The notes under the pieces: generated by a model
What the model was told of the DNA's origin: nothing
Database searches by the model: none
Seen by the model: only the letters and a program-made list of their open reading frames with translations
Program-made: the position numbers and the translations under genes
Assembly: GCA_013115145.1 (NCBI GenBank)
Contig: JAAPAO010000014.1
Coordinates: 77,854 to 141,853 of the forward strand
Reading direction: 5' to 3'
Source of the DNA: Perkinsus chesapeaki ATCC PRA-425
Lineage: Eukaryota > Protista > Perkinsozoa
Length of the DNA stretch: 64,000 nucleotides
Shown here: in pieces, positions 1 to 14,935 of the stretch
Layout: every line of letters starts with the position of its first letter
How positions within the stretch are numbered: position 1 is the stretch's first letter

Positions 1-1183
1 CTTAACCCGGGAGCTATCACATTCTACCGCACACAAGGAGAAGTATTCCCCTTGCTTATACTGTGTAATGCAAACACCGTCCTCCCCCAGGACATCCAGC
101 TCGCGTGCCTGTCGAATTGGCAGTGCTAATTACAATTATTTCTTCTCTTTGTACAAGCTACTTCGTGTCCGTCGCCCCATTCGTAGAGGTTATCCCCGGG
201 AGTGAAGACGCAGCCGCTCCTGTTCCCTGCAGCTGATATGAATGTTATTTTTCGGGCACTACCGAGGGGAACGATCTGATGTAATCAGCGCGATACATGG
301 TTGCGTCCTGGAGCTTTTACTCGAGTAACTTGGTTATGCCCTTTAACGTCAGCGGCCGTAGGGCTTAGTTGTCCTTGCTGGTTCGAGCCGCATGAGAATA
401 GCTCGCCAGTATTGGTTAGGAAGAGAGCGTGTTCAAGGCCAAATGCCACACACCGCACTTGACGGGACATCCACGCTAGCCATGGCTTAGGCCTCGGGAG
501 GAGCCCACCGAGGTTCAACACCATCATGCTTCTAATGGGCCACGAGGGTTACGCTGCATAGCAGGGCATTATGCTTACTCGTGTTTGCTGGAGTGACTGG
601 ATAATGGTGTGGACAAGGCCCACACTCCGTCGGGCCCCGAGATTATCCTTGGTTGTGGGGGAGCCTCCTGAAGTACCCGTTCGAGCAGTCTAAGAGACTG
701 CGTTATTTACACTTGTCTCGTCGTCATCTTCCGGTGGGCATATCAATGACTCTATATCAACTCTAGATTGTCCAGCTTCATTAAGTAGTGCGTCTAGATC
801 GTTATATGCCGCGTCACCATCGCTAACGAGTAGCTAACACCAGTGTATCATCTCGGGGTAGCTGAGTCACGGTCCAACCTCGGTCCAGTGGATCTCTACA
901 GGCTGACCCTCTGCGAATTGGTGTTCTATCGGGTACCATTCGAACAGTCTAAAGTGCTTTGCTCGGATTGTCTTTGTCTGTTTTCCCCTACCTCTCATCC
1001 ATGGTCACAATGGTGACCTTATCTCCAGTTACCGATGCGTCTGCAACACCATCGACAGGGACCCGACAACGAAGCGATCTAAAGCGGCAAATTGAGGGAA
1101 TATGAGCAAACGGGTAGCTACTTTTGGTCCTGAGAAGGCCTGTGGGCGAAGCAGTAGGCCGATAACCTTGTATCAACTGTCAT
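1..1183 (-). CDS. RCC1/BLIP-II repeat protein, multi-exon, 3' end outside window
   Basis: Exon 285-527 encodes FGLEHALFLTNTGELFSCGSNQQGQL (RCC1 blade: H.L.L...G.LFSCG.N..GQL). Upstream exons traced by eye through GT-AG introns to an ATG at 1183 (MTVDTRLSAYCFAHRP...). Confidence 0.7.
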
Positions 1184-1204
1184 TGACGCATACACAACGC
1201 TTAG

Positions 1205-1260
1205 GCACGAATAGCTGGGAGAGCAGAGGCGCAGGTTCGAACCCCGGGAGCGGCATTTTT
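1205..1260 (+). pseudogene. Internally deleted tRNA-like element (A-box, B-box, T5 tract; no anticodon arm)
   Basis: gcacgaaTAGCTgggagagc...GGTTCGAACCCcgggagcggcaTTTTT resembles the ends of tRNA-Phe-type genes. The stems pair poorly and no anticodon arm is present. Confidence 0.4.
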
Positions 1261-1335
1261 ATGTCAACAACGCGATATTGCAAAATTGTGATCGCATCCG
1301 ATCCTTGCGTATCAAACCGCAGTTCATTCCCTACA

Positions 1336-3789
1336 ATGCAACCATCCCGTCGCATATATGCCAATGGACTAACTCGTCAAGTTCGCCGGCACAATGATCT
1401 CCAGAGTCGTCTCATTACCGCCGATAAAGAAGGTAAATAGCTATTCCCAAGGATGGTGGTCCAATGATTCTCAGAATTCGAAGAGGCTTGTCAAGAGCTC
1501 CTTTCATCGACCAACGCCTGCCCATCAGAGCTGCTGTGTGCTGCCGGCCGGGCCGTGGCCTCGACCAAGCTCACAGTGTCCCCGAGGACCAAGGAGGCTT
1601 TGTGTACCGCAGCTGGACGATTATTGGAGATCAGTACTAATTTAACAGCAAGTGATGTAGTAGGGACACTCGCATCACTGGCATCTGCCGGACGGGCCTC
1701 CGGGGTGGCTGCACGCCATCTGATTGATGGTCTCAAGGGACATCTACCCTCCATGGTCCCGAATATGAGCCCTCAAGAGCAACTCAAGGCCATTGCCGCC
1801 TTACAGAAGCTCAAGGAGCCCTTCAGCCCCACAGTCCAGCTGTTGCTCGACAACCTAGCCTCCAAAGCCGGGTTAGATACTCTCAGTGACTTTGCCTTGG
1901 CCTCTCTGTCCAGGACGGTTGCTACTTCGGGCTGGAAGGCAACTGGGTTCCCTGAATCGCTGGCGGCCTCGTGGAAGCGTCGAGTCCTGACCCATCGTGA
2001 GGTCAAAGCAAACGTGCACACCGCAGTGATATTCGCCCTTGGCAAAATAGCGGATAAGGGTGTCGTTAGGGATGCGCTGAGAACCTCCAACAGCTCTCTC
2101 GACTTTACCAATTTCACCTTCACGGAGCTGTCGCAGATCTTATGGGTTTATGCCAATAATGGCGACGTACACCCCGCAGAGTGCCTTTGGAAATGCCTTC
2201 TTTCAACGGTCTCAGTGGACGGTATGATTGCCTGTGGTAGGCAGACCATCGGTTATGCCTTCTGGGCCGCTGGAGTGATGTCCCAGAAGTACCAGGGGGC
2301 CGAGAGCATCTTGCCACTGCATCTCATCGAGGTCATGGCTGACAGCGTCGTACTAGGTAGCGTCAACGGTTTCCAGCCCTCCAGTGTGAGCTATATGGTT
2401 TGGGCAGCGGCCCTAGCCGGTGAGGAAGAGCGGGTCAAAAGCTTCTGTTGTCATATCCTTGGGGATAACTCGACACCCGAGGCCGTCGGAAGGTTCAAAT
2501 CTCTAGAGCTAGCGAACGTCTTCTCGACTATTCGCGCTTTGGGCCTGGAAAGTGCCGTCCCAGACTTCGCAGCATCTGCCCGACAGTACTTCCTGGAAGC
2601 TGCTGAAACTGCTGCTGGTACCGCGGCCAATGGAAGGGCATTCACCCAAGTAACATGGGCCATGGTACCTGACGGTGGCCCGGAGATAGAGGCATTTATG
2701 AAGTGGTTTGTGGCCAACTCGGCGGGAGTCAGCGTGAGGTCTCTGGTCAGGATGCTATGGGCTGTCTCGAAATGTGATGGGCTGGCGGAGACCACAGCGG
2801 GTCGGTCGGCCATGGTTGTTTCCTTGGTCCAAGCCGCTGGGGAGAGGTTTATGGGCGAGAAGGGAGACAGACTGGTGCAGCAGGATGTTGGTTTGATGGC
2901 ATGGTCGTTGGGTACTTTAAGATTGTCCCATTATGACTTGGAAGATAAATGTTGTTTATTTGGTATAGATATGTTATTTAATAATATAATAGATAGTCGA
3001 CATTTATCAATGTTACTTTGGGGTATAACATCTAATTCACATACATCACCAAAGGCACTACAACTTATCAAACATGTTGTATCAGCCGTTAACGCCGGCA
3101 GCATCACCTTCGACCCTGTCGACGTGGCGATGGTCCTCTGGGCTATGGCCGCCCTGGACGTCTATGATGAGTCTGCCTTCCGAACCCTCCTGTCGGTGTT
3201 GTCTGCCGGCATTGACCAGCTTCCCTCGACTGAGAGACGGTCTAGCCTGAGCAAAGCCCACCGGGCCTATCTATGGGCTGCCTCATCGCATGGATTTGTA
3301 TTTTCCTCCGAAGAGGTCGTTGGCATCGCTGAGGCTTTGGAAGAGTCCCAGCGATCTAGCGGTGCAGTCTGTGCCAACGGTGCCTTCCAAACGGAGGTCT
3401 GCCAGGCCCTAGCGAGAGTGCTTCGGCGATCAGTGCTACCTGACGCCGAGATTTTATCTGAGGTCGACCTTGCTCCTGCCCTACCTGGTTTGGTGGTTGA
3501 TGCTGCCATAGTCGATCCTAAGACAGGCTCGAGGGTCCTTCTCATCGAGGTGGATGGTCCCCATCACTACGTAGACGTCCTAGGCTCCACAGGGATAACA
3601 GCTCGGCAGTATAACGGTCAGAGCCGGCTAAAGCAGGACCTTATTCGCCGTGCAGGGCATAAACTCCTTTGCGTTGAAGATGCCAAGTGGCGCATCCTGA
3701 AGGATCCAGCCGCCCGGCACGAGTACCTGTCCCATGAGGTGGCCATGGCCCTCGGTTTGGGCTCAACTAAACAATTGTGTCCGACATGA
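1336..3789 (+). CDS. OPR-like helical repeat protein with C-terminal RAP domain, copy 1; join(1336..1432,1475..3789)
   Basis: A 42-bp GT-AG intron joins an Arg-rich N-terminus (MQPSRRIYANGLTRQVRRH) in frame to the 744-aa ORF. Repeated 'S.ILW..A' helical units. RAP signature VDAAI...IEVDGPHHY...KQDLIRRAGHKLLCV...W. Confidence 0.85.
2890..3076 (+). repeat. AT-rich in-frame cassette, copy in RAP gene 1 (partner 5590-5776)
   Basis: 187 bp with 2 mismatches to 5590-5776 (offset exactly 2700). Hand count gives 59/187 = 32% GC, against ~60% in the flanking coding sequence. Confidence 0.97.
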
Positions 3790-3851
3790 GTTTCCGATTC
3801 TCCTTTGCCTTCTGTTGCCTGCTCGTCAATAAGGCTCTCTGCTTCAGCTTC

Positions 3852-6462
3852 ATGTATGTCACCCGGCAGCTCAGATCGGCGCTATCGACTAAGGATGCTG
3901 GCCGCCAAGTGAAGGAGCTGCGCAAGCTTCTGGACTCCCGGGATCGAGGTCAGTTACCAGCTCTTGTGCCTAGTCTTGCTGCTTTAATAAATCGGGCTCA
4001 TCTACCTCCCCGATGGAGGGAGGCTCCAGATTCCATTAGCTCCTTGGTATCTTCGAAAGTTTGCGGGTCGTCCAGCTAGGCGCTGTTGTGGGAATAACTG
4101 AGGATGGCTTAGATATTCCAACACTCCCCTCTTAGGAACCTCCACAGCGGCCTGTAAGAGGGTAGCCGACATTCTCACCAACGCCTCCGATTCTCCCATT
4201 CGTCTGGAGTTCACACTATTGGCCGCTGCCCTCGGCAAATGCTCGCAGATGCCAAGCGGTCCCCAGCAGCAGCATCGGATGCTTACGGCTATCAGCGAGG
4301 CTATGATCCAGCGCCTGGAGGAAGACAAGTCCCATGGTCTCTCCCCCAAGAGGCTCGCTGAGACCCTCAGAGTAATCGCCGTCATTGGCAGGTCAGCTCC
4401 CGAGGCTGTGGTCAAGCTTCGCGGCATGTTGCGGCCCCAGCTGCTGCCTGCTATCCCAGACATGGCCGCACTCCAACTCCGACACGTTGCGTGGGCCATT
4501 AACAGACTGTCGTTGCCGTGGCGCGATGAGGTCCGCTTAGCCGTCTCCACCCTACTAGACCGCATTGGCGTATCATCTGTCGGCTCCGAGGAGCTGGCCA
4601 CCTTTGTCTGGGCTGCGAGTCGGATGGGGTGCTGCACCCCTCAGTTGGCTGCCACAGTAGCCCTTGATTGGACCGGTCGAATTAATAGCCCAGGTGTCAC
4701 CCCAGAGGCCCATGCCATGGTCCTGTCCTCGCTGGGGGCTACGGCCAAGACCCGAGACGATGTCCTGCTGCTTTTCGACACTTGCTCGGCCCAACTAGAC
4801 TTATCCTCCCTCAACACAAGCAGCCTAGCGTCCCTCCTATGGGCCTTCGGTCATGTCACCAATGCCCCTCTAAACGCTCGTGTCTGGAAGACCTGCTTGG
4901 CTACCTTCACTGAGGCCACCGTACGAGATTGTCCGCTATCCAGCCTCGGCAATGCCTGCTGGGCAGCCGGCACCATTTTCCAATGCACAAGCTCGGATCT
5001 GCCGCTGGTCTTCATCCGTCACATCTGCGGTCTGATCGCATCCAGCGATCTGGGGCCGTTCCCCTCCTCGGCTATCTCGAGCATCGTTTGGGCTGCAAGC
5101 CTCGCTAATGACGGCGGCCCTTGGGTCGAGGGTGTCTTCCGTCACCTCTTGGGCAACGGTACCTTCCCACTAGAAAAGGTGCATCTCTCATCACAGTGGA
5201 AGCCCCTCGAGCTGGCCACGGTCCTCGCCTCTATAGCCGACGCCAGCCTCGATCAAGCACTCTCAGGCTTCATCGACTTGGCAAGAGCATCCGTAGTCGA
5301 GACCGTCAATTCCTGGCCGTCGACCTCCCAGAACGCTCTCGCAGTCTCGCAGCTTTCTAGGGCTCTGTGGTCCTCTGGTGAAGTGGCCATCCTTCCCATG
5401 GTCGAATGGGCCCTGGCCAATGGTCACGTGCTGACGCCTCAGAGCGAAAGCAGGATACTGTGGGCTGCTGCCAAGATGTTTGAAGCCTCTGCTCTCCGGG
5501 AGCAGCCGGCCTGCGTAGTGGCCTTCATCGAGAGACTGTACCAACGATGCTGCGAGCGGCAGGCGCAGGAGTACTCCCAGCAAGATGTGGGTTTGATGGC
5601 ATGGTCGTTGGGTACTTTAAGATTGGCCCATTATGACTTGGAAGATAAATGTTGTTTATTTGGTATAAATATGTTATTTAATAATATAATAGATAGTCGA
5701 CATTTATCAATGTTACTTTGGGGTATAACATCTAATTCACATACATCACCAAAGGCACTACAACTTATCAAACATGCTGTCCATCGAATCGAAGATGGTA
5801 CCTTCCGACCGCTGCCCGCTGATGTCAGCCTTATTATTTGGTCACTCGCCGTCGCCGACCACTACAGCGACAGGGCCCTCCGACAGCTGCTGTGGGCTCT
5901 GTTCACCGATGGCGCGGTCATTAGCCCCGCAGCCCCACACACTGAGCGAGGGGCCTCTCTCATTAGACTTCATCGAGCCCTCTTGTGGGCCAGGGTCTGC
6001 CATGGCTTCGTACCAAATAACGAAGAGGAGGCCAAGCTTATGGCCATAGCCAAGGCCCAGAGGGTTCCTGGTGGTGGGATACTCAACAGCAGCACTTTGC
6101 AGCTGGAGATACGAACCCAGCTGCAGAACATCATCTCGACTGAGACGCCGACCGCTAGTCTTCGGGATGAGTACGAGCTGCCATGTCCCTTGGAAGGCAT
6201 CTTCGTCGACCTCGCCGTGATCGCTCCAGATGGCCGAGTGGAGCTTGTCGTGGAGGTCGACGGCTACTCGCATTTCTCGCAGGTGATCGGTTCGGGAACG
6301 CTGCCATCTCTGCAGTACAACGGTGCCACCGAGCTCAGCCGGCGGATACTGCGAAAGGCAGGGTACAGGGTCCTCAGCATCAACACTGTTGACTGGAATA
6401 ACACACAACGACATGAGAGAGGGCAGTTCTTGACAAGACTCTTCCGAGAGGCAATGTCATAG
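3852..6462 (+). CDS. OPR-like + RAP domain protein, copy 2; probable join(3852..4066,4113..6462)
   Basis: ORF 3777-4079 (MYVTRQLRSALSTK...) joins ORF 4219-6462 through a phase-compatible 46-bp GT-AG intron. Repeated 'LA..VWAA..L' units. RAP motif VDLAV...VEVDGYSHF...ILRKAGYRVLSINTVDW. Confidence 0.85.
5590..5776 (+). repeat. AT-rich in-frame cassette, copy in RAP gene 2 (partner 2890-3076)
   Basis: Direct sequence comparison; differs from the partner only at 5626 and 5668. Confidence 0.97.
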
Positions 6463-6541
6463 TGTTTCCGCAACCTTCAAGTTTCGCAGCTCTCTAGCTC
6501 TGAGTTGTCCTACTACCTCGCCAGGTTGGCAGTTCCACTTG

Positions 6542-9019
6542 ATGGCTTCGACCACCACAGCTGCCCTCTGGCAGCATGCACGGACATGTACCACGACAGT
6601 GGCGACTGGGCATGGGTTTGCTGCCATCTCGGACCCGTTCAAACTGCGCAAGATACTGCTGGATGCTAGCAGGCAGAAGAGGAAAAGCGGTACGTCTCCA
6701 CGGCCTGGGCATCTCATTGGTTCCCTTTCAGATATATTAGCAGTCTGCCGTCGGGCTCTGGTTCTCAGTGCCACAAGTGCGAATTCACCCTCCGTGAAGT
6801 TGCAATTGTTGACCACCTCACTTCACCGATTGGTCAAGCATTTTTATAACTCTCATGCGGAGCTTGTTGATTCCCATTGCGAGGAACTCTCGAAATCGCT
6901 GGAGCCCTCGGAGATTGCCATCAACGACATCGCTGATGTGCTGTGGTCCATCGGTATGGCCGGCGCGGCCTCTCCGTCACGCGCCGCCCTCTTGAGCATG
7001 ATGAAGCCCTCGGTACTCGGCCTCCTCGCTGGGGCCTCTCCAAGTCAGCTCAGCAACGTAGTTTGTGCCATTGCTAAACTTGACCTCGACTGGTCTGAGG
7101 AAATTACCGAATCTATGGCACAGTGTCGTGACCGACTTGGTATTGAAACCACAGCTGCTGGAGTCATCTCTAACATTTGCTGGGCAGCTGCTCGTACTGG
7201 CTGTCGTGATGATGCCTTCCTCAATGACGTGGCGGCGACTTGGCTCTCCCGCGACGCGAAATCTGTCCCGCCATCGGCGACAGCAATGGTCTTCTGGTCC
7301 CTCGGTAAGCTCGCGCCCGAAGCTTCCTACGTAGCCGACCTCTTTTCTAGAGCTCGCTCCCATGAGGGCCTGTTTTCCGGTTTCGGTCTTCGGGAATGCA
7401 CATCAGCCCTCTGTGGGTATGCTTACTCCGGGAAGGTTATCCCCAGTGTTGAGCTCTTCAAGTTGGCGTTCGGGTCACTTGAAGCGGCGAGCCAGGGGCA
7501 TGTCTCCACTCAGACCATCGCCAACTGTTGCTGGGCATCGGCGACGCTAGTGAAGCACCACGGGGATCAGATGATGGCACCTGCCAGCTGTCTCACCCGA
7601 GCATTAACGGAAACCATCTCTAACGCGCGAATAAGGTCCTTTAATCCACAGGAAGCATCCAATGTCTTGTGGGCCTCAGCGCAGCTGCTCGATGCCAATC
7701 ATGTGGCTTCAGTGGCAAGTGCCCTATTGCCAGCCAACCAGCAGCACCTCGCAAGCTACACCCCCCAGGACATAGCTGTGTGTCTAGCTGCATTGACCCA
7801 GGCTGGAGTTAGAGGGGCATTCGAGACCTTCTTCGTGTTGCCAGCGATGCAGAAGGTTCATCAGACTATTCACACTTGGCCCTCGGACAGCACTCACGTT
7901 CATGCCGTGGGGCAGCTGGCTTGGTCCATGGCCGGGCGGCAATTCCAAGCGATATCTCCACTCCTACAGTGGGCCTCGTCGAAGGCTATAAGCTCAGAAA
8001 CTTTTGTGAAGCTCCTCTGGGCCACCGCTTCGACCCCAGAGGCCCAGAGGGGCTCCTTGGTTACCCCTCCAGAGCTCCTGGACCTTCTCGACAAGAGGCC
8101 TGAAGGCACCCTCAACCAACAAGAGCTGGCATTGACTCTGTGGTCCCTTGCAACCCTACGACTGTCACACCAACAGCTAGAAGAGCAGTGCGCTATTGAA
8201 GCCAGAGAAATCCTTAGCAGTAGCGGCTCATCCTCAATCACCAGTGGGCACTTGTCAATGGTCATGTGGGGACTGGCCTCCAATTCACATCGCTCTGCAG
8301 CAGCAAAAGAACTCATCCAGGAGATTGTCGAGCAAGTCGGTTCAAGGCGGTACCGGTTTACAGCGGCCGACTCGCACCATGTCGCTTGGTCCCTAGCAGC
8401 GTCTGGCGTTTTCGACCCCGCAATCCTGGAATTGCTTCTGTCCGCGGCGGCCACGGTTGATATTGACAACACTGCCCTCCAAAAGGTGAACCAGCTCGCA
8501 CTGTGGGCTTCATCACACGGTTTTCGGCCTTCCCCAATGGTGGCTCATCTCTTAGCACGAGCATCTGTGGCAGCTAACATGGAGGCAACGGTTGCCGACA
8601 GTATATTCCAAAAGCAGATCGCTGCATGTCTGAATGCGGCTGTCGGCAGCATCAACACCTACAGAGTTTCCCCGGAACTCGATCTCACTTCTTTCGGTTG
8701 CCCCGGAGTCATAGTCGACCTGGCAGTTCTACGTCCCAGTGGCGCTCCTCAAGGCGAAGTGGCATTGATAGTTGAAGCCGATGGTCCTTCGCATTACATT
8801 AACGTGGTGGCTGACAAGGCCGTCCAAGGGCAAGTTCTAGATGGCAAAACCATGATGAGACGAGCCGCTCTGAAACGGCTCGGCTTTGCCGTACAGGATA
8901 TTAATATATCTCAGTGGAAGAGTCTGAGTCGGAGCGATAGGCAAGAGCTTGTCGATTGCATGGTCAAAGAGCAGTTGGATTACGGAGGAAAGCCTCCTGA
9001 ATTAAGTGGCTGTTTCTGA
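6542..9019 (+). CDS. OPR + RAP domain protein, copy 3
   Basis: 825-aa ORF from the ATG at 6542. Clear OPR-type units SFNPQEASNVLWASAQL, SYTPQDIAVCLAALTQAG and LNQQELALTLWSLATL. RAP motif VDLAV...VEADGPSHY...LKRLGFAVQDINISQW. Confidence 0.88.
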   Translation: MASTTTAALWQHARTCTTTVATGHGFAAISDPFKLRKILLDASRQKRKSGTSPRPGHLIGSLSDILAVCRRALVLSATSANSPSVKLQLLTTSLHRLVKHFYNSHAELVDSHCEELSKSLEPSEIAINDIADVLWSIGMAGAASPSRAALLSMMKPSVLGLLAGASPSQLSNVVCAIAKLDLDWSEEITESMAQCRDRLGIETTAAGVISNICWAAARTGCRDDAFLNDVAATWLSRDAKSVPPSATAMVFWSLGKLAPEASYVADLFSRARSHEGLFSGFGLRECTSALCGYAYSGKVIPSVELFKLAFGSLEAASQGHVSTQTIANCCWASATLVKHHGDQMMAPASCLTRALTETISNARIRSFNPQEASNVLWASAQLLDANHVASVASALLPANQQHLASYTPQDIAVCLAALTQAGVRGAFETFFVLPAMQKVHQTIHTWPSDSTHVHAVGQLAWSMAGRQFQAISPLLQWASSKAISSETFVKLLWATASTPEAQRGSLVTPPELLDLLDKRPEGTLNQQELALTLWSLATLRLSHQQLEEQCAIEAREILSSSGSSSITSGHLSMVMWGLASNSHRSAAAKELIQEIVEQVGSRRYRFTAADSHHVAWSLAASGVFDPAILELLLSAAATVDIDNTALQKVNQLALWASSHGFRPSPMVAHLLARASVAANMEATVADSIFQKQIAACLNAAVGSINTYRVSPELDLTSFGCPGVIVDLAVLRPSGAPQGEVALIVEADGPSHYINVVADKAVQGQVLDGKTMMRRAALKRLGFAVQDINISQWKSLSRSDRQELVDCMVKEQLDYGGKPPELSGCF

Positions 9020-9079
9020 GCTTCTTGTTTCACACAGTGACTGTATCTTTTCGTGTTTACCACTGCGGCGTATTATAAC

Positions 9080-11615
9080 ATGGTTTCTGCTAGTATCACG
9101 TCACTTCGGGCTTCGATGTATCGTCCTCTCGTGGCATCGTTGTCCAGCAAACCTGTGACGGTTTTGGCCTCGGCACCTTCGAGGTTGCTGTCAACGACTG
9201 CAGTGGCAGGTAAAGCCTCTAATCATATGGCTGTTGTGCCCCTGCATTCCAGGTTCCCGACGTTCCCCCATGAGCTTCGTCGAGGGCTACGAGTACACCG
9301 TACAGAAAGAGCTTGTGAAGGCGCTGAAGCGAGGCACCGATGAGAGCCTCACCTCCGCTCGTGGCTTTTGCATGACCTTAACTGACGTCCTCACATTAAG
9401 GCCCGCCAATATGAAGCTTGCCAGAGAGCTGCTTCTCCTGCTCTCGGAATCGAAGCACTTTGTCGAAGGCCATCGAGATGTCGTGGATCTACTCGCTGAC
9501 ACCTTGAGGCCCCGGCTTACCGAGGAGACCATTTCCCGTGTTCAAGGCCGGGCACTGGGCCAAATGGCCGCATCTATCGGCAAGCTCAACCTTCCTTGGT
9601 CCGAGGAGGTTACTCTGATAGCTCGACACTGCACGGAGCGCATAGGTCTTGAAATGATGTCAGCTACAGCTGTAGTCAGTCTCGCCAGCGGCATGTCGAA
9701 GTGCGACGGTAAACTGGAAGGCTTTGCAGAAGCGTTGGCCCTTGATTGGAGCAGGCGGCTGAATGGTGACGATGGATCCTTAAAGCCGGCTCTACATGTT
9801 CTCTTCTTCCGAAGTCTTGCCCACTTATCGGCCGGTCAGCCCAGTACTGTTGCTCTGATGCACGAGTTCAATCGGGTAGCAGATATCAGTGCATTCACAC
9901 CACACCAGAAGGCTCAGCTCTTTGGGGCGCAGAAGCAGATCCTTGGCGACGGAAATGCCCGGAGCGGTGAGGTCGATCACGAGGACCCTGCCAAGCTATC
10001 GCTGCCCGAATTAATGAAGTTGTTCGCCACGTGTGCACGGCGGAAGGAGATTCCCCGAAAAACGATCGTCGTTGGCCTAGTCGAGATCCTCCAGAATCCC
10101 GGGCCACCGATCGAGCCTCATCTATTGGCAAACCTGTGTCGAAGTGTTGGGAGTCTCCTCAGTAACAGAACCACCAACTCCAAGGACCTTCATCAGCTTC
10201 TTGAGCTCCTCAATTCCACACTGGTCCACTCCCCCAGCCCCCTCCAACTCACCGATCTTGGTAGCATCCTGTGGGCGAGCTTGTCTTCCCCTTCCCCGAA
10301 AGTGAAGCGTCTGGCCTCGGTGCTCCTAAGCAAGGTGGATGCTGATTCATTAGCCCTTGCACAGCCGCAAGTCCAAGCACCCGTCCTGTCGGGCATTGTA
10401 GGACTCGGTCTCGCCCAGGACTTTGCTGATCTTGTCGGACGCATTGCCGAGCTGCGTGGCATGAGTTCTTGGTCGTCCGACGATGTGAGGGGGGTCAGCC
10501 AGCTTGTCGGGCCGCTGTCGCGGATTCCTGGCATGCGGCCGCAGGTCTTGGCCATGGCTGCGTGGCTAGGGAACAAGCCCGAGTGTTTGACAGGCTACGT
10601 TGCCGGAAGGGCATTGAGGGCTATCGCCAACTGCAATTCTGCTCGGCAAATCCTGACTGAGTTCCCTGAAGCTGCCCACAGGTTCTGCGATATTCTCGGC
10701 AGTCACTGGGATCAGCTCGATGCATCACCAAACCTGATACTCGCCGACGTGGCATCGATAATGTGGGCTCTGGCAACACTTCGGTTGTCCGACTACGACC
10801 TGCAGGAGAAGTGCTGTCAGTCAGCTGTTAGGCTCCTCCGACAAGCTAGTAAAACTCAACTCCTTCAAGCACCAGTACTTCTGTGGGCACTGGCTTCCAA
10901 CGCTCATCGGACGCAAGGCTCCCGAGCGCTCCTTCTGGAAGTGACGCAGACCAACGCAGCTTCACAACTACCTGTTCGTGAGCTGCCGGTGATTGCATGG
11001 GCTGCGGCTGTTTTCAACGTCTACAATGAGGCCTTCCTCCGAGATATTCTCGAGCGCTGTTCTTCTGGCACCCTGGACTCTGCCGCCCTTTTCCGACTTC
11101 ACCGAGTGCTACAGTGGGCCACAGTCCAGCGTGATTTCCAGCTTCACGGTCTGAAGGATCTGGCGGCGAGGGCTGCCTCAGAGGCAATGAGTAGTGCAAT
11201 ACCGTCCAGCAGCTCCTTTCAAGACGAGCTCATCAAAGAGCTTGAGCCTCTCGTTACGGAGGTGTGGCCACAGTGGGAAGTGGTCTCTGAGTACAACTTA
11301 TCTCCTCACGCTGCTGGGGTAGTCTGCGACATTGCCTTGCTCGATAAAGTGTCCCGAAGTCCTCTAGTGCTGCTAGAAGCCGACGGCGCGCCGCACTTCG
11401 TCCACTGTGTTTCATCTGATGGTACACGCCGCCTTGCCTATGATGGTAAGACTGAGCTCCTGCGCAGGATCCTCACGGCGCTGGGCTACAACATTGTGTC
11501 GATAGACACTAATTCATGGAAGTCTACTGCACGGTCAAAACGGCAGAACATGCTAAAGGAGCGCATCTATGCGGCGCTAAAGGGCAAGGTGTTTCAGGAT
11601 TCCGTTTCAGCATAA
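9080..11615 (+). CDS. OPR-like + RAP domain protein, copy 4; join(9080..9209,9253..11615)
   Basis: A 43-bp GT-AG intron joins a Ser/Thr/Arg-rich, acid-free leader (MVSASITSLRASMYRPL...SRLLSTTA) in frame to the 793-aa ORF. RAP motif CDIAL...LEADGAPHF...ILTALGYNIVSIDTNSW. Confidence 0.87.
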
Positions 11616-11733
11616 TTTCTGATAGTGTTTTGTTGTCATTATAGTGGCGAGTTCTGCGCGAACAGAGCTACAGCTGGGTATATTAAACTACCTTCTATTG
11701 GGGGTCTCACGCTACCATCAGTTTTGGAATTCG

Positions 11734-12639
11734 ATGGGCTCTGCAACTGACGATGATCTGATAGAATTCGATACCATGGTGTCGGCATACTCGCTGCCGC
11801 TCGTTTATCAGCAACGCTTCCGGCGTATCGAGGAGCGGCTCCATCGACTAACTGATGCCTTAAGAGAACAGCGGCGATCTACGCCGAGCTGCAGTCCAAG
11901 CGGGAGCCCACAGCGCATGGCAAGGAACAGAAGTGTGGTGAACCTCTCCCCTAATGACGCTCCTCGGACGCAGCCCAAGTCAATTTACCACAGAAGCTGC
12001 GTTCCGCCACCTCCTCTACATTCCCCTAAGACTAATGTATCATCCTACAGTGGGAAGTATCGGTCCCCTACTCCGTCGAGGAAGCTACCGGAGTGTCATG
12101 TCGATTTGTCCCCTTATCTACGTCAAGCAGCAGCGACACCGGAGAAAAAGAGCCTTGTGGATGCCCCACATGAGCATCGCGTGTCGGTTGAAAGTGAGAG
12201 AATATTGGCCGACTTGCACGCTATGGACGAACGAATTGCCACTATCGAGCGTGAAGTGAAGGGCTCTTTGAAACGGCAAACGCCACCGTCGTCACTTGCG
12301 GAGACGCATAACACTCAAGCTGCTGCGTCGCAGGTTGAGAGGAAAGTGCCGGTGAACTATTCTGGAGCTCCGGCAAGCTTGCCTCCCAGCCGACTCCCAC
12401 CAGGACGGATACAACTTAGCAGCAGTGTCAGCACGTGCGGTGAGATGCGACGGTCACCACGCCTGGCAGAGTCGAGACCACCAAGTTGGAGGGATTTGGC
12501 GGCCACTTCAGCCAAGCATTCCACACCGTCGGCCACATCAAGCCATAGCCCGTCCGAGCCGGTCCTCTTAGCGCCTCAGCTTGACAACTCCCAACGTCGT
12601 CCAGGGCGTATCGGTAAAATCGGCAAGAGTGTTCAATAG
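11734..12639 (+). CDS. Hypothetical Ser/Pro/Arg-rich low-complexity protein with short coiled coils
   Basis: Long uninterrupted ORF 11644-12639; first in-frame ATG at 11734. No recognisable domain. Confidence 0.55.
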   Translation: MGSATDDDLIEFDTMVSAYSLPLVYQQRFRRIEERLHRLTDALREQRRSTPSCSPSGSPQRMARNRSVVNLSPNDAPRTQPKSIYHRSCVPPPPLHSPKTNVSSYSGKYRSPTPSRKLPECHVDLSPYLRQAAATPEKKSLVDAPHEHRVSVESERILADLHAMDERIATIEREVKGSLKRQTPPSSLAETHNTQAAASQVERKVPVNYSGAPASLPPSRLPPGRIQLSSSVSTCGEMRRSPRLAESRPPSWRDLAATSAKHSTPSATSSHSPSEPVLLAPQLDNSQRRPGRIGKIGKSVQ

Positions 12640-12749
12640 CCTGTAGCATTGCTATCAATGTCTGTTGTGTTATTAGTTCATGTTTTATAGCTGTTAACTA
12701 TTTGAACTCGGTGACTAGTGCGGTACGAAACGTGAATAGTTGGTACGAG

Positions 12750-14935
12750 ATCAAAATGCACCAGGGGCCGCGGAACGTTTGCCCCGTCGCCTCGATGGAG
12801 GGTTCTGTCTCTCAATCATCGTTCGGAAATCGATTTGGGCATCAGACCGAGGCCACGTTTTTTCCAGGGCCGATCGCAGCATCTCGACAACAGCGCGGGG
12901 AGGATCGGATGGACCACCCTGCTCACCGGCAGCGAACATCGAGTCCTCGATGCAATCCATAACCTAAAAACAAAATGCTAAAATGCCATAGCTGAAGCAT
13001 ACCGATCGAAGCTCCAGTAAACGATGGTTAGCTGTTGGCTGAACTGGTAAACTATCAACACCTGAGCGAGGGGACTTAATGTAGGGAGTAGCCGTGGAGC
13101 TACCTTCCCTGACGGCCCGTAATGTCCGCCGAATTTCGATCTTCATTTCTCCTGACCCAGCTCGCCGAAGCCGTGGCGGTCGGGCATCAGTTATACCGCT
13201 CGGCTAAAGGGAAATGAGACTCGTAGGAAGGTCGCCTCGGGCTCTTACTCTATCGGGCCTCGTCACTGCTGGTACGATCTCCTCTAGCATGTCCTCTATT
13301 TTCCATGCCACTTGCCCAAGGGTCTCCCATTCATTCCACACTGGTATGCCTCCTGAAACATGACAACAATAGGAGGCAGGCAATCCTATATGAGAGGAGA
13401 ACGACCCATTGAGTCCGCAAGTAACCAAAGTCGACATCTATGAAGCTCACTTTGGGTATCAACCTGCGATGATGTCGGTATGGATTTGTCATTAGCTGAT
13501 AAGCGGGCTGTTGATTGCTGAGGATCAGGGAAGACAGGCGGCGGCCTCTTTGAAGAAGAGGAGGAAGACCTGCAACATGTTTATTTCTCGTCACGAATGG
13601 GTGACGTTCCTACTGAGGCGGATGTTGCCGTTTGTCTGGCTGTTGGGCATCTTGTTGCCGTTGCTGTCCTGCCTCCTCTGCTACTCGATTGTTGGCTAGT
13701 TCCATCATGAAGTATTCTACTTCCTCGAGCTTATCCTCCTGTTGCATCTGGAACCAGGAAGCTCTCCTCATCGACCTATCACCACTCAACCCACCTGCTG
13801 CCGTTCCCATTCCTCACAGAGTTCCCGTGCCATCCGGAGCAGCTCCGGTGGCAGGCCGGAGGGAGGCAGGGGGACTTCATCGTTCAAGAAGCTCTCGAGG
13901 ACGTCAACTAGAATGTTGCACAATAGGTGACAGCATTCTGACTATATTCTTACCCTCAAATTCGCTCAGGTCCTCACCTGCTTTCTCTCTGTTAACCAAT
14001 TCCATGATGGCGCGCTGTCGCTGTCGAGCTCTTGCCTTACGCCTCCGCTTTTTGGCCGCCTGATAAACCCTTCTTAGCTTTTCCTAGATATCGAACGATA
14101 CTTTGCTGAGTCTAACAGGCTCCTCCCCCTCCTGTGGTGCCTCTGATTGTCGAGGCTCATCTAGGTGCGGTGGTTCGTGGTCTTCCTGTTCGGGTTCATC
14201 GTCGATAACTATAACCGTACTTGATGGGGAGTTGTCGTCGCCGTTTTTCAAAGGTATCGGTGCCAAATCTGCGACACTGTTCTCAGTGTCTGCCGCCAGC
14301 AGCAGCCGCTCCTCACCTTCGTGGTTCAGCTCTTCTAGCTTCTGTGAAGGCGAGCTCCTGTCGGCAACCTGGAAAAGATGGCGATGTGTTTCATACGACC
14401 CATATGATAATGATGATATGAGAATGATGTCGCCTACATCAGATGTTGAGCCGTTCTCGTTTCGACCTACTTTTGGAGCCGGAGCTGGTTGGCTTTCCGT
14501 GCGAGCAGGACGGATGTTCTGCCAGCGAACGTGATGGCGATGACAGTAGTAATCTGTACCTCTCTCGATGGGGTCTCTGTCGGCGATGGAGAGGATCGAT
14601 CGTCGTCAGATACCTCAATAAGTATCCGAACTTTTTCGCTCAGTGAAGAAACCGACAAAGCATGCTCCTAGAGTGGTGAGATCATATACTGGTTTCGGCA
14701 ACATGCTTACCGTTAGAATCTGGTCGAGAAAGATGAGCTCCCCGATCAGTTTGTCTTTATCGGGCTCATCACCCTGGCCTTCGCAGATGTCACCACCTTC
14801 ACCGGGAGACAGTCCCACCAACTGACCCTGCAAAGACACACACGGTCCGTCTCTGGCACTATGTAGCAGACACTCACCCGTATGCCGTCCACGGCCGATA
14901 TCGCACCGAGGAGGCCCTGCATTAAATTGCTGCAT
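12750..14935 (-). CDS. Hypothetical multi-exon protein (acidic/charged, coiled-coil segments); boundaries approximate
   Basis: Chain of minus-strand coding-like ORFs (14615-14935, 14467-14658, 14084-14266, 13610-13810, 13204-13437, 12751-12960) separated by short intron-like gaps. Confidence 0.4.

Follow-up and report, generated by a model that had tools for sequence, protein, structure and literature searches.

An old tandem quartet of FASTK-like helical-repeat RAP proteins in Perkinsus, likely to act on mitochondrial RNA

Four adjacent genes of Perkinsus chesapeaki ATCC PRA-425, each ending in a RAP domain, raise the question of what such a cluster does and whether it is a young, diversifying array or an old, stable one. 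The genes occupy positions 1336 to 11615 of the window, the 64,000-nucleotide (nt) stretch of contig JAAPAO010000014.1 analyzed here, in a head-to-tail array with every gene on the plus strand. For the fragmented rRNAs and unusual mRNAs found in the mitochondria of myzozoans, RAP and HPR proteins stand out as the chief candidate handling factors, and Perkinsus offers a tractable model of this group. The explanation that we consider likely is that the four proteins are ancient, Perkinsus-only tandem duplicates of a FASTK-like helical-repeat/RAP protein and act on mitochondrial RNA. They are new members, restricted to the genus, of a protein class already well known, and not a new, rapidly diversifying system.

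Gene models and fold of the quartet

The open reading frame (ORF) listing gives four long ORFs on the plus strand, at 1555-3789, 4219-6462, 6539-9019, and 9234-11615. Since too many GT..AG combinations fitted when single introns were enumerated, the gene models and 5' ends of genes 1, 2, and 4 were instead set by comparison with the annotated orthologs of Perkinsus olseni, and their introns are comparative predictions from the P. olseni models. The features are as follows (aa, amino acids).

1336-3789, plus strand: RAP gene 1 (W1), 803 aa, ATG at 1336, stop at 3789
1336-1432, plus strand: predicted exon 1 of gene 1
1433-1474, plus strand: predicted intron of gene 1 (42 nt, GT..AG)
1475-3789, plus strand: predicted exon 2 of gene 1
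3544-3732, plus strand: Pfam RAP match of gene 1, 26.3 bits
3852-6462, plus strand: RAP gene 2 (W2), 807 aa, ATG at 3852, stop at 6462
3852-3948, plus strand: predicted exon 1 of gene 2 (97 nt)
3949-4135, plus strand: predicted intron of gene 2 (187 nt)
4136-6462, plus strand: predicted exon 2 of gene 2
6250-6432, plus strand: Pfam RAP match of gene 2, 35.6 bits
6542-9019, plus strand: RAP gene 3 (W3), 825 aa, intronless, same as the public gene call P0001
8771-8941, plus strand: Pfam RAP match of gene 3, 27.7 bits
9080-11615, plus strand: RAP gene 4 (W4), 830 aa from the ATG at 9080
9210-9252, plus strand: predicted intron of gene 4 (43 nt)
11376-11552, plus strand: Pfam RAP match of gene 4, 27.2 bits

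The length and the peptide of the first exon of gene 1 are kept in its P. olseni ortholog. For gene 2, both the peptide of exon 1 and the residues that begin exon 2 can be aligned to the annotated model of P. olseni, in which exon 1 also measures 97 nt. An alternative start of gene 4, the ATG at 9116, gives the 818 aa of the public P. chesapeaki call FOL47_001637 (P0008). When all six frames of the window were scanned with a profile of the C-terminal module, exactly four copies were recovered, which are these four genes. The original prediction, made from the letters of the DNA, had placed four tandem genes of about 800 to 850 aa at these coordinates, and both the sizes and the positions are borne out.

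All four copies carry a C-terminal RAP match (PF08373) above the Pfam gathering threshold of 24.2 bits, which was the profile check proposed for them. The fold was explored with an AlphaFold2 model of copy 3, built on an 83-sequence alignment, with a predicted local distance difference test score (pLDDT) of 91.8 and a predicted template modeling score (pTM) of 0.87. In this model, residues 1-23 are predicted to be disordered, approximately 34 helices span residues 32-702, and a compact alpha/beta domain is placed at residues 708-812. Trp-bearing helices recur in the model every 35 to 46 residues (mean, ∼40), which would correspond to approximately 14 hairpins. Comparison with solved structures, using Foldseek and VIA-align, gave the following VIA matches (rmsd, root mean square deviation).

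Trypanosome RESC chain 8fni_6: Z 22.7, rmsd 4.8 Å over 440 residues, model residues 28-519
Toxoplasma gondii mitoribosomal RAP protein 9i05_Xi: Z 22.6, rmsd 3.6 Å over 336 residues, model residues 415-812
Human FASTKD4 FAST1-FAST2-RAP, 9gek (303-633): Z 21.4, rmsd 3.8 Å over 284 residues, model residues 507-823

Next came mitoribosomal helical-repeat proteins of Chlamydomonas, Polytomella, and Tetrahymena. Nearly all solved matches of the model are organellar RNA-handling proteins, and generic importin-like solenoids score far lower (Z 11-13). The domain modeled at residues 708-812 aligns inside the 9gek and 9i05_Xi matches and is predicted to have a restriction-endonuclease/Vsr-like alpha/beta fold. 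The architecture that had been read from the sequence, a helical-repeat array with a terminal RAP domain, is thus confirmed by Pfam, the AlphaFold2 model, and the structure alignments, and the best solved matches (mitoribosomal proteins, RESC, and FASTKD4) support the claim that the quartet belongs to an organellar RNA-binding class.

Placement within this class was explored with a profile of the cluster, which matched 2942 proteins at E≤1e-3, 742 of them at E≤1e-10, among 1.84 billion representatives. When 45 of the best non-Perkinsus matches were scanned with Pfam, FAST_1 was found in 42, RAP in 41, and DUF1601 in 21. The nearest full-length clusters in the ESM Atlas are chlorophyte RAP/FAST_1/RESC6 proteins, with a template modeling (TM) score of 0.71 over 699 residues, and vertebrate FASTKD4 reaches 0.51. 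UniRef already labels the P. olseni and Perkinsus marinus relatives “RAP domain-containing protein.” The consensus repeat of the relatives, F.PQ..SN..WA.A, is recognizable in some hairpins of the cluster (for example, FNPQEASNVLW in copy 3), and an xWAxA motif occurs two to nine times per protein. The degenerate hairpins of 35 to 46 aa carry a motif of the F.PQ..SN.LWA.A type that is common to HPR, OPR, and FAST_1 repeats. DUF1601 is a 37-position Pfam repeat model that we take to be HPR-like; against the 37-aa HPR repeat, the quartet has approximately 14 hairpins at a spacing of 35 to 46 aa and gives no DUF1601 match.

The four genes had been named OPR-RAP. The repeat length is compatible with the 38 to 40 aa of OPR repeats. 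However, the OPR hallmark PPPEW (PMC6212722, PMC8635915) has no counterpart in any copy, apart from one PMVEW in copy 2, and the nearest relatives are FAST_1 plus RAP proteins, so that the label is loose. A better name is FASTK-like helical-repeat RAP proteins of the HPR/OPR class; “OPR-RAP” was a near miss and not an error.

Age of the quartet and the tract common to genes 1 and 2

The four paralogs share only 24 to 35% aa identity, and the identity matrices show clean 1:1 orthogroups across P. chesapeaki, P. olseni, and P. marinus. Ortholog identities are 55 to 60% between P. chesapeaki and P. olseni, 53 to 58% between P. chesapeaki and P. marinus, and 66 to 72% between P. olseni and P. marinus; copy 1, for instance, is 60% identical to P. 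olseni gene 1 and 58% identical to P. marinus gene 1. Both P. olseni assemblies examined (L001 and L002) hold the same genes in the same tandem order. The L002 contig carries all four followed by the same downstream gene, and the L001 contig ends inside gene 4.

In P. marinus ATCC 50983, genes 1 to 3 lie in tandem on GG687015 and are followed by a 3' remnant of gene 4 of ∼220 nt (L003 14931-15153). Loss of gene 4 from P. marinus was considered and rejected, given that an intact ortholog, Pmar_PMAR010197, is present on GG670562 (L004 10001-13501) with the same downstream neighbors. The other P. marinus orthologs are Pmar_PMAR007492, Pmar_PMAR007491, and a 795-aa gene 1 (GG687015, L003 7113-9556). 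The next genes, an I42 inhibitor and a Na/Ca exchanger, are common to the two segments, which are only 68 to 77% identical in DNA. The three-plus-one split therefore looks like an old segmental duplicate with reciprocal loss, its age being judged from this low identity.

A maximum-likelihood tree built on the C-terminal module groups the 13 Perkinsus sequences in a single clade against 93 other rows, with a Shimodaira-Hasegawa-like approximate likelihood ratio test (SH-aLRT) support of 99. The outgroup rows are the best-matching proteins fetched, and since other Perkinsus RAP paralogs need not be in the top 150, the clade denotes monophyly relative to the nearest available sequences only. Within this scope, the tree is consistent with tandem duplication in the Perkinsus stem, and the separate clade supports the earlier claim that the cluster arose independently of the Chlamydomonas NCL cluster.

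Between P. chesapeaki and the other species, synonymous divergence (dS) has reached saturation or has no defined value, so ratios of nonsynonymous to synonymous divergence (dN/dS) were taken from P. olseni against P. marinus and from the two P. olseni assemblies. They are 0.12 to 0.20 for all four genes in the former comparison, and 0.28 for gene 1 and 0.26 for gene 2 in the latter. The description of the cluster as diversifying is contradicted by these values, by the low paralog identity, and by the 1:1 orthologs in three species. As far as comparative sequence data can tell, this is an old, stable quartet under purifying selection, neither a young nor a diversifying array, and not one of the NCL kind. 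Its members are four definite candidates, confined to Perkinsus and kept throughout the genus, with named P. marinus orthologs.

The most unusual feature of the locus, more curious than the cluster itself, is a tract of ∼200 nt that is nearly identical in genes 1 and 2.

2878-3080, plus strand: homogenized tract in gene 1, 203 nt, 98% identity to 5578-5780
5578-5780, plus strand: homogenized tract in gene 2, partner of 2878-3080, GC content 0.32, GC content at third codon positions (GC3) 0.24, against 0.57 and 0.64 over all of gene 2

Over the same columns, the tracts of genes 1 and 2 are 98% identical in P. chesapeaki, 93% in P. olseni, and 97% in P. marinus, against a DNA identity of 40 to 43% in the remainder of the two genes (43% in P. 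chesapeaki). Between species, the tract is 65 to 67% identical when P. chesapeaki is compared with the others and 83 to 86% identical between P. olseni and P. marinus. The two helical hairpins that it encodes open the FAST_1-equivalent region, the best-conserved part of the four paralogs. An assembly artifact was rejected because three species, each assembled independently, all show the same effect, and selection at the nucleotide level was rejected because the between-species identity of P. chesapeaki in the tract (0.65 to 0.67) was judged no higher than that in the flanks (0.58 to 0.64). A tract that is homogenized within each of three species, yet different between them, points to recurrent short-tract gene conversion since before the species split, that is, to concerted evolution. 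It would offer a clean natural example of very long-lived short-tract conversion in otherwise saturated paralogs.

Only in P. chesapeaki is the tract AT-rich, with the GC of 0.32 and GC3 of 0.24 given above against 0.55 to 0.57 and 0.58 to 0.64 for the genes. Relative to P. olseni, the P. chesapeaki tract has 47 to 50 strong-to-weak differences and 7 to 10 weak-to-strong ones (5:1 to 7:1), compared with 281 to 332 and 267 to 275 outside it. GC-biased conversion predicts the reverse, and the direction of the bias is unexplained.

The tract also enters into a wider reading, in which the quartet would be a set of Perkinsus-specific mitochondrial RNA factors that co-evolved with genus-specific features of mitochondrial expression, such as rRNA fragments that are missing or encoded in the nucleus and mRNAs with frameshifts. 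Proteins 1 and 2 would then keep an identical two-hairpin FAST_1-like module for docking on one common partner, RNA or protein, and this constraint would have been met by short-tract conversion in all three species from before their split. This combination, which leaves the AT bias in P. chesapeaki without an explanation, we regard as rather improbable.

Several further observations concern the locus and its surroundings. The two P. olseni assemblies have the same DNA in gene 3 (100% identity; L001 10177-12537, L002 6055-8415) and differ by 4.5 to 5% in the adjacent genes 1 and 2; along the locus, they are a mosaic of identical and diverged DNA. The P. olseni model KAF4660706.1 (2401 aa), which falls in the gene 1 cluster, seems to be adjacent genes merged into one annotation. 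The intron of gene 2, predicted at the same position in both species, measures 187 nt in P. chesapeaki versus 48 nt in P. olseni, and ARAGORN and Rfam found no match in it (3949-4135).

The stop-to-ATG spacers (3790-3851, 6463-6541, and 9020-9079) measure 62, 79, and 60 nt, compared with 87 to 134 nt in P. olseni. Spacers of only 60 to 79 nt suggest that the genes may be co-transcribed, possibly with resolution by spliced-leader trans-splicing. The same spacers are pyrimidine-rich, with AG dinucleotides.

Upstream of gene 1, positions 1184-1260 contain a T-arm-like string, GGTTCGAACCC; ARAGORN and an Rfam scan at E≤1 found no tRNA there, and the tRNA and Rfam scans of window positions 1-13000 gave no matches. 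A tblastx comparison of positions 1-1335 with the P. olseni L001 contig gave no upstream synteny match. Downstream, positions 11644-12639 encode a Ser/Pro-rich, probably disordered protein with no Pfam match. Synteny of this gene extends to P. olseni (55% aa identity over 281 residues) and to the P. marinus GG670562 segment (about 48%).

Proposed action on mitochondrial RNA

Binding of mitochondrial RNA by the quartet would follow from family, fold, and published work. Each copy would consist of a short N-terminal leader, approximately 14 degenerate hairpins, and a module equivalent to FAST_1/FAST_2/RAP with a Vsr/PD-(D/E)XK-like fold. The proteins would enter the mitochondrion, which is the one organelle of Perkinsus reported to bear a genome; the plastid is not known to have one, as had been stated in the original prediction. 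In the mitochondrion, the solenoid would bind a defined stretch of single-stranded mitochondrial RNA, which would belong to an rRNA fragment or to the end of a cox1, cob, or cox3 transcript, and the RAP module would then cut beside the bound site or hold and protect the RNA end as human FASTKD4 does. Because the paralogs are only 24 to 35% identical and yet each is under purifying selection in three species, the four proteins most likely each have an RNA target or partner of their own and are not redundant.

Published work on related proteins fits this proposal. RAP proteins of Plasmodium bind mitochondrial rRNA fragments (PMC8917122), and the Toxoplasma mitoribosome has five built-in RAP proteins, among which mL138 joins rRNA fragments (PMC11742926). 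The lineage-specific HPR protein mRSiC stabilizes two coccidian-specific small RNAs, and many lineage-restricted HPR proteins are found across alveolates, perkinsids included (bioRxiv 2026.01.22.701003). Mitochondrial rRNAs are fragmented in Perkinsus (PMC9550989), and P. marinus has 19 RAP proteins (PMC8190603). The quartet fits the category of lineage-specific factor.

The genus-restricted clade could also be seen in the light of the programmed +1/+2 frameshifts of Perkinsus mitochondrial mRNAs, which are likewise genus-specific and for which “binding molecules” were left open as cues (PMC9550989). The quartet would then supply trans-acting frameshift factors. Nothing beyond the shared genus specificity speaks for this, and the published mechanism relies on codons that go unused and tRNAs that are absent, and not on RNA-binding proteins acting in trans (PMC9550989). 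Moreover, 18 to 19 frameshift sites stand against four proteins, and HPR/RAP paralogs specific to a lineage are frequent in all myzozoans, which do not frameshift. A role of this kind is hardly credible.

The N termini bear on import. The acid-free N-terminal stretch measures 53 aa in copy 4, 30 aa in copy 3, 20 aa in copy 1, and 14 aa in copy 2. Internally, acid-free stretches of at least 31 aa occur at 2.7% of positions, those of at least 21 aa at 11%, and those of at least 15 aa at 22%. The leaders of copies 3 and 4 are rich in Ser, Thr, Ala, and Arg, acid-free, and poorly conserved, and those of their orthologs measure 38 to 39 aa. Acid-poor leaders had been described for copies 1, 2, and 4; this stands for copy 4 and is ambiguous for copies 1 and 2, and the clear presequence-like cases are copies 3 and 4. 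Of the SRLLSTTA motif pointed out in copy 4, R-L-[LF]-S-T is kept in the P. olseni ortholog; it resembles an R-3 processing site. Mitochondrial localization of the quartet is therefore plausible from the protein sequences.

The RAP core was inspected with regard to cleavage. The RAP blocks of copies 1 to 4 read LLIEVDGPHHY, LVVEVDGYSHF, LIVEADGPSHY, and VLLEADGAPHF. Their signature E...D...ExDGxxH matches the published block NpNpNpAcNpAcGPxHF (PMC8190603) and is kept in all four copies and the P. olseni orthologs with one exception, and the E, G, and H are invariant in 8/8 P. chesapeaki and P. olseni sequences. The exception is P. olseni gene 3, which reads EANG where all other copies read E.DG. 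Replacement of the Vsr-type Asp by Asn hints that this protein, at least, may be non-catalytic. Nuclease activity is doubtful for copies 2 to 4 because they have lost the consensus Lys (T.LK.R.L in the relatives), which is located in the helix that follows the ExDG strand; copy 1 alone retains it and is the best nuclease candidate. Human FASTKD4, with the same fold, is reported to be non-catalytic (PMC11879112), yet the discussion in PMC11879112 cites FASTKD5 as having been newly found to act as a nuclease, so that activity is not readable from sequence.

Several results weigh against the proposal that the quartet acts on mitochondrial RNA. The loss of the Lys in three copies is one, and the short, basic N termini of copies 1 and 2, with their first acidic residue at positions 21 and 15, are not statistically unusual. 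Pfam FAST_1 scores 14.0 bits in copy 1 and 16.7 bits in copy 2, below its cutoff of 27.4, and gives no match in copies 3 and 4; no copy has a FAST_2 or DUF1601 match. The proteins are near neutral (isoelectric point [pI], 6.4 to 8.7; net charge, −6 to +7), which sets them apart from many mitoribosomal proteins embedded in rRNA. The top Foldseek match of the copy 3 model is the Polytomella ATP synthase subunit ASA2 (6rd4_2), a member of the fold that does not bind RNA. The best PDB sequence match in a profile search, a T. gondii RAP protein of 443 to 445 aa, reaches only E 7e-4. Furthermore, three conserved RAP proteins co-migrate with the P. marinus mitoribosome (PMC13623125), and the quartet, as far as can be judged, is not orthologous to them.

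The ASA2 match, the neutral pI, and the missing Lys would all suit helical scaffolds of some other mitochondrial or cytosolic complex, which bind no RNA and retain a degenerate, non-catalytic RAP fold. In VIA, however, ASA2 superposes with an rmsd of 21.7 Å, against 3.6 to 4.8 Å for FASTKD4, the T. gondii RAP protein, and RESC, and the RAP signature of acidic residues and His is kept in all paralogs and species, apart from the Asn of P. olseni gene 3. We hold a scaffold role to be very unlikely.

A structural role in the Perkinsus mitoribosome, with the four proteins serving as “joints” for rRNA fragments like Toxoplasma mL138 instead of working freely in RNA processing or stabilization, has more in its favor: mitoribosomal helical-repeat or RAP proteins of T. 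gondii, Chlamydomonas, Polytomella, and Tetrahymena are among the closest solved structures, and many uncharacterized proteins co-migrate with the mitoribosome in the P. marinus complexome (PMC13623125). Yet the quartet proteins have about double the length of the T. gondii RAP subunit (825 versus 444 aa), to which they are only distantly related, their pI is near neutral, and their clade is restricted to Perkinsus, whereas mL138 is conserved across Myzozoa (PMC11742926). That the quartet consists of mitoribosomal subunits appears unlikely, if by no means far-fetched, and we favor lineage-specific factors acting on mitochondrial RNA.

Comparison with known systems

The C-terminal module of ∼310 aa superposes on human FASTKD4 (9gek; PMC11879112) with a Z of 21.4 and 18% identity. 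As in the FASTK family, an N-terminal leader precedes an all-helical region, and the RAP core has a Vsr-like D/H signature. Unlike FASTK proteins, those of the quartet have a much longer upstream solenoid of approximately 14 hairpins, with FAST_1 below threshold and FAST_2 undetected by Pfam, and they form a Perkinsus-only lineage encoded by tandem genes.

The myzozoan HPR/RAP proteins (PfRAP01/21, mRSiC, mL136, mL138, and mL147) have the same architecture and also comprise lineage-specific paralogs. The quartet differs from them in its repeat spacing (35 to 46 aa, mean about 40, versus 37) and in giving no DUF1601/HPR-type Pfam match, and its proteins are double 9i05_Xi in length. The profile search against PDB sequences detected no orthology to the conserved mitoribosomal RAP proteins.

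With the trypanosome RESC proteins (8fni/8fn4 chain 6; PF26188, “RESC6”), the N-terminal two-thirds of the solenoid aligns, and structural neighbors of copy 3 in the ESM Atlas often carry PF26188. In contrast to the quartet, RESC chains are without a RAP module in the aligned part, and they belong to guide-RNA/mRNA editing complexes, which are not known in Perkinsus.

The NCL cluster of Chlamydomonas is said, in work by Boulouis et al. from 2015, to be a large array of closely related OPR-RAP paralogs. A review (PMC8635915) describes NCL proteins as sharing a highly conserved central region. The quartet resembles the NCL proteins in its helical repeats, C-terminal RAP domain, and tandem paralogs. 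If the NCL array is as described, the quartet differs from it in lacking PPPEW and in consisting of four old paralogs with 1:1 orthologs and dN/dS of 0.12 to 0.28.

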